NCBI RefSeq assembly: GCF_052425735.1
Contig: NC_135761.1
Location: 25,916,001-25,980,000 of the forward strand
DNA from: Oculina patagonica
Taxonomy: Eukaryota
DNA: 64,000 bases
Direction: 5' to 3'
The notes under the pieces: generated by a model
Databases searched by the model: none
Told to the model about the DNA's origin: nothing
What the model saw: the letters and a program-made list of their open reading frames with translations, nothing else
Shown here: one piece after another, positions 2,090 through 2,199 of the stretch
How the letters are laid out: each line of letters begins with the position of its first letter
Position numbering within the stretch: position 1 is the first letter of the stretch
Program-made: the position numbers and the translations under genes

Positions 2090-2199
2090 TTTATTTTTAA
2101 CTCCGCCTAGGGTCATTACACTGAAAACCCTAGCCGGTCCCAAGCCCGGGTAAAGGAGGAGGGTTGTGTGTTGGGTTTGAATTCCACACATAAAATAAA
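2090..2199 (+). ncRNA. Twister self-cleaving ribozyme, type P1 with P3 and P5 stems; predicted cut between U2098 and A2099
   Basis: P1 TTTATTTT(2090-97)/AAAATAAA(2192-99); UAA 2098-2100; P2 CTCC(2101-04)/GGAG(2155-58); P3 CTAGGGT(2107-13)/ACCCTAG(2127-33); P4 CCGG(2134-37)/CCGG(2146-49) with loop TCCCAAGC; GAGGG 2159-63 for the pseudoknot; P5 TGTGTG(2165-70)/CACACA(2185-90). The core GCCGGTCCCAAGCCCGG.TAAA....GAGGG matches the eukaryotic twister consensus. Confidence 0.92.

Follow-up and report, generated by a model that had tools for sequence, protein, structure and literature searches.

Natural roles are known, to our knowledge, for few eukaryotic self-cleaving ribozymes, and almost all of these lie in retroelement RNA processing. 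Two parallels to the 3′-end cut considered here are the discontinuous hammerheads in the 3′ UTR of rodent CLEC2 genes and the MALAT1-type 3′ ends with their encoded A-rich tract. In both, a 3′ end past a coding or A-rich region is produced by cutting the RNA and not by polyadenylation, as proposed below, although the ribozyme or enzyme responsible is different from a twister. MALAT1 has its A tract at the cut, whereas here the tract ends 72–75 nt before the cut, and no counterpart of the MALAT1 triple-helix element was identified at the Oculina locus.

Variants of the twister ribozyme have been published as the 5′ heads of LINEs of the RTE clade, in particular Perere-3 of Schistosoma mansoni (Liu et al. 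2021, PMC8501958; PMC7761336). The Perere-3 twister is of the same class as the ribozyme described here and has a near-identical core, CUCC GC ... CCGGUCCCAAGCCCGG RUAAA GGAG GAGGG UUGK (PMC8501958). The two differ in place. In Perere-3 and RTE elements the twister stands at the 5′ end of the retroelement, whereas here it lies in the 3′ region of a transposase gene, within a DNA transposon bounded by terminal inverted repeats and TTAA, with no reverse transcriptase or endonuclease nearby and a flank that is single-copy.

Among DNA transposons, a close known counterpart is the Kol0 lineage of Kolobok (Kapitonov and Jurka; Kojima and Bao 2022, PMC9587614), which shares with our element the TTAA duplication, a DxxH transposase accompanied by a second Cys-rich protein, and occurrence in cnidarians. 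The second protein of the Kol0 lineage, KolX, has a P2X7-like cytoplasmic ballast fold. No ribozyme is known to have been described in any Kolobok, whereas the Oculina element carries a twister.

The element was found in a window of 64,000 nt of Oculina patagonica DNA (chromosome-scale contig NC_135761.1, named C4 below, positions 25,916,001 to 25,980,000, forward strand) and the positions given below refer to this window unless a locus is named. The initial annotation knew of no earlier account of a twister in a Kolobok, and our literature search agrees in finding no paper that links the two. Papers that bring twisters together with DNA transposons and their transposases deal with bacterial guide RNAs or, going by title, with unrelated matters, and those that mention self-cleaving ribozymes alongside DNA transposons with terminal inverted repeats are likewise unrelated by title. 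Twisters and their association with mobile elements were known before; a conserved place inside a DNA transposon is not known from the literature searched.

The ribozyme and its host element

A sensitive Rfam scan of positions 1900–2400 aligns the full twister-P1 model (RF03160, model positions 1–68) with 2094–2167 on the plus strand, scoring 65.2 bits with an E value of 1.3e-14. The score is 2 bits below the gathering score of 67.2, and a scan of the whole window at the gathering threshold gives no match. The shortfall is attributable to an 11 bp hairpin, seen on folding at the P5 position (2164–2193), which is inserted ahead of the 3′ strand of P1. The model expects that strand straight after GAGGG and here pairs UUUU with UUGU as P1. 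The UAA of the cut site is at 2098–2100, with cleavage predicted between U2098 and A2099. P2 is CUCC/GGAG (2101–2104 with 2156–2159), P3 is the 7 bp helix CUAGGGU/ACCCUAG (2108–2114 with 2127–2133) and P4 is CCGG/CCGG (2135–2138 with 2147–2150) closed by the loop UCCCAAGC. The pseudoknot partners GCC and GAGGG are in place, as is the UAAA, and the posterior marks over the core of the Rfam alignment are asterisks. Energy folding is uninformative on the twister (z-score −0.99), with pseudoknots outside the folding model. The complete core that the initial annotation recognised at 2090–2199 is therefore borne out by the Infernal comparison it had proposed and, on sequence criteria, 2094–2167 is an intact type-P1 twister with all core elements present.

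The P1 helix is another matter. An 8 bp pairing of 2090–2097 with 2192–2199, listed in the initial annotation among the base-paired elements, can indeed be drawn. It consists entirely of A-U pairs, it appears in neither the unconstrained nor the core-constrained minimum-energy fold, and random 12-mers from the same AT-rich locus reach it in about 5% of trials (chance P ~0.05). The homologue described below has a P1 of 3 bp only, so that the 8 bp helix is unconserved. The further argument that a retained 5′ strand of P1 excludes the leftover of a retrotransposon is weak, given this chance level and lack of conservation and because in Perere-3 LINEs the 5′ strand of P1 is supplied by the target-site duplication (PMC8501958). 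P1 is reported to be dispensable for cleavage, at reduced efficiency, and a twister of the present type that lacks P1 may cleave inefficiently (PMC8501958).

The host is a complete element of 6815 bp, spanning L043:7429 (L043 being the upstream DNA) to position 4243. Its terminal inverted repeats are 23 bp long with one mismatch between left and right; the right copy occupies 4221–4243 on the minus strand, and the left copy starts at L043:7429, outside the window. TTAA is present on both flanks, at 4244–4247 and L043:7425–7428. In foreign copies and in a truncated sibling the element starts at this very base, again next to TTAA, and homologous elements have the same ends. The view that the host is a DNA transposon with two convergent genes is supported by these ends and by the genes described next.

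The transposase gene lies on the plus strand and has at least 11 exons. Exon 1 (L043:7894–8529) is upstream of the window, and the 3′ part of the gene (62–1857) comprises exons at approximately 62–162, 261–353, 459–559, 687–842, 1021–1137 and 1711–1857, the stop codon TGA being at 1855–1857. The exons match those of the homologous element described below at 63–97% amino acid identity. The open reading frame at 75–227 contains a DSWH motif that fits the C/DxxH signature, which is common to Kolobok, hAT, P, MuDR and Dada (PMC9587614). A dispersed repeat of approximately 235 bp (1422–1653), with at least 40 other genome copies at 84–87% identity, is nested in the last intron.

The opposing gene, on the minus strand, is KolX-like. 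Its last exon is 2772–3234, with the stop codon at 2772–2774 within an open reading frame of 2772–3260; introns follow at 3235–3541 and 3603–3833, with further exons upstream on that strand. Homologues, at 44–98% identity, occur across corals, and the Cys and His columns of this Cys/His-rich protein are invariant. The protein has no match in Pfam, PDB sequences or the Atlas, and its AlphaFold model, at pLDDT 48, is too poor for a fold search. Its identity as KolX would rest on arrangement and composition, which match the published description. Similarly, the transposase matches neither piggyBac nor any other Pfam domain, and the termini, ACAAG...CTTGT or 5′-AC...GT-3′, differ from the 5′-RR...YY-3′ stated for Kolobok (PMC9587614). 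On the basis of TTAA, DxxH and the lack of a piggyBac domain, we class the element as Kolobok-like and probably of Kol0 type.

The stop codons of the two genes are separated by a spacer of 914 nt. The twister lies on the transposase sense strand with the cut 241 nt past the TGA, and 573 nt separate position 2199 from the KolX-like end at 2772, very close to the distances of about 240 and 570 nt first estimated. Between the transposase stop and the twister is an A-rich tract of 133 nt on the plus strand (1891–2023, 80% A), ending 75 nt before the cut and containing six AATAAA hexamers at 1900–1934. Beyond the twister there follow a (CTAC)n microsatellite (2571–2656), a repeat that forms kilobase arrays elsewhere in the genome, and a pure A24 run on the plus strand (2706–2729), 43 nt from the KolX-like stop. 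The microsatellite or the A24 run may be a degraded tail left behind by an ancient retro-insertion. The report of no reverse transcriptase fragment and no target-site duplication around the twister agrees with our results: open reading frames in the spacer encode no reverse transcriptase or endonuclease domain, nothing near the twister has protein similarity, and inspection by eye gives only a 10/13 direct repeat, 2085–2097 against 2749–2761, and no clear duplication. Outside the transposon, some 500 bp of the window (9502–10006) are 95% identical, in inverted orientation, to C4:34051079–34051585.

Homologues, origin and descent of the twister

The twister-P1 model has at least 28 matches in the Oculina genome, and no Kolobok-like coding sequence is found within 1.5 kb of the others. 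Two LINE families, A and B, are headed by the same kind of twister as Perere-3 and RTE elements; similarity between their copies starts at model positions 5–8, which is the cut site, and continues into a long element. In one (L031) an endonuclease-like open reading frame begins, by eye, about 250 nt after the ribozyme. Eight loci (L016, L019, L028, L029, L031, L032, L036 and L037) represent twister-headed LINE families and their short derivatives with internal deletions; copies start at the cut site and have (AAG)n or (AAC)n microsatellites as tails. A third family, C (L020–L025; C1:7338476, C5:2067972, C6:6962650, C12:7251442, C12:13948598 and C1078:1401051), has a canonical P1 of 7–8 bp straight after GAGGG. 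The surrounding repeat is 3 kb or longer, with 97–100% identity between copies and no open reading frame of more than 81 residues within 1.5 kb; in some copies, similarity already sets in some 450 nt ahead of the ribozyme.

The transposon twister has the LINE-head signature, a hairpin after GAGGG and then RUAAAA, and its hairpin agrees exactly, over the 5′ half, with the hairpin of the decayed copy L038. Since hairpin and RUAAAA are those of the LINE-head twisters, the ribozyme was probably captured from the 5′ head of a LINE, to judge by these shared motifs. That it is itself the head of a multi-copy retroelement was considered and rejected: the 369 nt that follow it (2200–2568) occur once in the 529 Mb genome, with no domain or protein similarity. 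This uniqueness also makes a recent retro-insertion unlikely.

Is the twister a regular part of this transposon? The Oculina genome contains a single sibling copy (C4:34.04 Mb), which breaks off after about 2.2 kb and so is useless for the comparison. Homologues of the KolX-like protein led to loci in other assemblies, among which only one other full-length element was found, L085 (ENA ERZ25071802). This element is 7826 bp long and occupies a different genomic site with the same terminal repeat and TTAA duplication. It carries a twister with the same core elements on the transposase strand (L085:10902–10976, 61.9 bits). The cut is 215 nt past the transposase stop, compared with 241 nt in Oculina, and the A-rich tract, about 140 nt at 69% A, ends 72 nt before the cut, compared with 133 nt, 80% A and 75 nt. 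At least seven tRNA genes flank this homologous element (L085:800–6600 and 18131–18202).

The two elements are far diverged. Over 791 codons, identity at codon positions one, two and three is 0.755, 0.809 and 0.503; the third positions, at about 50%, indicate proteins under purifying selection with silent sites saturated. Introns are 0.26–0.51 identical and spacer segments 0.27–0.51. The ribozyme core alone is conserved in an otherwise unalignable spacer, at 0.80 identity (84% by local alignment), and the probability of at least 59 of 74 positions being identical at the neutral rate of 0.503 is 1.7e-7, a value that proves selection only if both twisters descend from one insertion, as all functional twisters are alike.

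Common descent is favoured because the two twisters have the same strand, place and spacing, a shared UUUUU, upstream of the cut and before AAC, and a private start to P3, TAGGGTCA, which occurs in none of the other seven P3 sequences compared. The upstream UUUUU is of particular value since a retro-insertion would not carry it along. The initial annotation had named absence of the twister from siblings, or membership of a dispersed repeat that landed here by chance, as findings that would count against it; the L085 twister, in the same place and on the same strand, does not refute the annotation and shows that the twister is no peculiarity of this one copy.

The recurrence of a twister in the spacers of other copies and homologous families, which the initial annotation had proposed to test, holds for L085 and fails for the related Kolobok families. 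In one family, with approximately 61% identity in the last KolX exon, the spacer measures some 200 nt and lacks both A tract and twister. KolX paralogue loci in the Oculina genome are negative by core scan (0 of 13) and by Rfam (0 of 12), and more distant Kolobok families (L098, L100–L106) have no Rfam ribozyme or twister core. From these related families we conclude that the ribozyme is a lineage-specific acquisition and not a general Kolobok feature. Loci from Desmophyllum pertusum and from ENA or Logan assemblies (L084, L086–L091 and L099), which are truncated, internally deleted or rearranged, have no twister, and the contigs of L092–L097 are too short to reach the spacer. L084:12500–13405 (Desmophyllum pertusum) and L087:10004–10723 are independent deletion derivatives in which KolX is kept and the transposase and spacer are lost; the left end extends to −2201 or −2491, counted in window positions, and is there fused directly to the KolX stop region at 2754 or 2776. 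Other searches gave little: the private 17-mer has only chance matches in JGI metagenomes, a search with the 52-residue transposase exon found nothing, and exon 1 representatives are mostly first-exon fragments, the sole long match being spurious.

The twister might have no role in the transposon. Twister-headed retroelements, LINEs or SINE-like, would then have landed in an A/T-rich spacer, either once or twice independently, and the motif would seem conserved because twisters in general resemble one another. The LINE-head type, with its hairpin and RUAAAA after GAGGG, fits such a history, as do the A24 run and microsatellite downstream, which resemble a retroelement tail, the 10/13 direct repeat flanking 2099–2748, and the lack of a twister in deleted, rearranged and related elements. 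Identity to unrelated LINE-head twisters, moreover, is 75–82%, compared with 84% to the L085 twister. However, an old neutral insertion is expected to be unrecognisable at a neutral identity of about 50%, and a recent one should have sister copies, whereas 2200–2568 is unique. Two independent events would also have to agree in position, strand, spacing, upstream UUUUU and private P3 start. We regard a functionless relic as unlikely, and inheritance under selection, as judged from these two full-length elements, is the favoured explanation for the twister in both.

Transcription and possible roles

Contigs from two runs, X1 and X2, which bear two organism labels, contain the transposase GT..AG joints 162/261, 353/459, 559/687 and 1137/1711 and the KolX-like CT..AC joints 3234/3542 and 3602/3834. 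The splice joints in these RNA-like contigs indicate that both genes are transcribed and spliced. Many loose contig ends fall at the borders of the 1422–1653 repeat.

Depth over the transposase exons is 71 in X1 and 172–215 in X2. Contigs over the twister have a depth of 65.9 in X1 (2003–2692) and 92.2 in X2 (1992–2166 and 2137–2899), whilst the KolX-like exons have 20.5 and 7.9, respectively. With a depth far above that of KolX, the RNA over the twister is most simply transposase-sense read-through. These contigs extend about 800 nt past the cut, to approximately 2899, and so enter the last KolX-like exon in antisense by about 127 nt. They bridge 2098/2099 at full depth, from which it follows that uncleaved or antisense RNA exists; contigs resolve no RNA ends. 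Raw-read runs of poly(A) and small RNA gave only one read each, on the 1422–1653 repeat; at the ribozyme there were none. In vivo, cleavage at 2098/2099 is a prediction from the motif.

What might the ribozyme do for the transposon? We propose that an RTE-like LINE, the setting of most twisters in the Oculina genome, supplied it from its 5′ head, and that it was retained because it benefits the transposon. Transposase-sense transcripts would continue through the spacer into KolX antisense and the twister would cut this read-through RNA at U2098/A2099. The 5′ product would consist of the coding sequence and the genome-encoded A-rich tract, ending in a 2′,3′-cyclic phosphate; the 3′ product, with a 5′-OH, would be complementary to KolX mRNA. 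Cleavage could in this manner set the 3′ end of the transposase mRNA and uncouple the transposase from the convergent gene. In its general form, an inherited LINE-derived twister that cuts the transposase transcript from its KolX-antisense tail and is kept for the benefit of the transposon, we give the proposal about an even chance of being correct.

A more elaborate version is that the domesticated ribozyme makes the 3′ end of the transposase mRNA without a poly(A) signal, downstream of an encoded A tail, and severs the stretch able to pair with KolX, sparing the element the double-stranded RNA that would invite host silencing. This we put forward tentatively, and doubt it more than we believe it. 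With six AATAAA hexamers in the A tract, ordinary polyadenylation upstream of the ribozyme may make the main mRNA end.

Those hexamers lead to another possible role. Polyadenylation would occur at the AATAAA of the A tract and the twister would then cut the read-through RNA co-transcriptionally, helping RNA polymerase II to stop before KolX. The six signals upstream of the twister, the convergent arrangement of the genes and, in X2, a downstream depth about half that of the exons are all consistent with this. In X1, however, the downstream RNA has a depth of 66 against 71 for the exons and reaches approximately 2899, unlike the outcome of efficient termination, and the torpedo exonuclease does not readily enter at a 5′-OH end such as a ribozyme leaves. 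An aid to termination therefore seems improbable.

Could the ribozyme instead restrain the transposon? Hammerheads in the 3′ UTR lower the output of some mammalian genes, and a twister that removes a real poly(A) tail would reduce transposase output and limit damage to the host. The twister is within transcribed 3′ sequence, and transcripts seem to run some 800 nt further; this would suit such a function, and conservation implies a benefit of some kind. The conserved A-rich tract upstream suggests instead that the 5′ product is usable, and we consider self-restraint decidedly unlikely. Least credible, with hardly any chance of being right, is a non-autonomous twister-headed element that uses transposase read-through and self-cleaves to provide template RNA for the LINE machinery: Oculina does have twister-headed LINE families with short deleted derivatives, and there is an A24 tail downstream, but there are no retro-copies, 2200–2568 occurring once in 529 Mb, and the region beyond the twister is unconserved in L085.

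Were the reading of a LINE-derived twister kept for its benefit to the transposon correct, selection would be maintaining a ribozyme near the 3′ end of a gene of a DNA transposon, which is a new biological setting, and a DNA transposon would have borrowed a functional RNA part from a retrotransposon. Two genes with one spacer, expressed in a culturable coral, would provide a tractable case in which to distinguish a maker of mRNA 3′ ends from an insulator of convergent genes.

The run contigs also differ from the window at several positions. There is T>A at 2091, in the putative P1, T>A at 2171, in the hairpin stem, and a difference at 2200, and X1 contigs show about 10 differences in the 370 nt after the ribozyme. 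Over the ribozyme core, 2099–2163, run contigs and window are identical.
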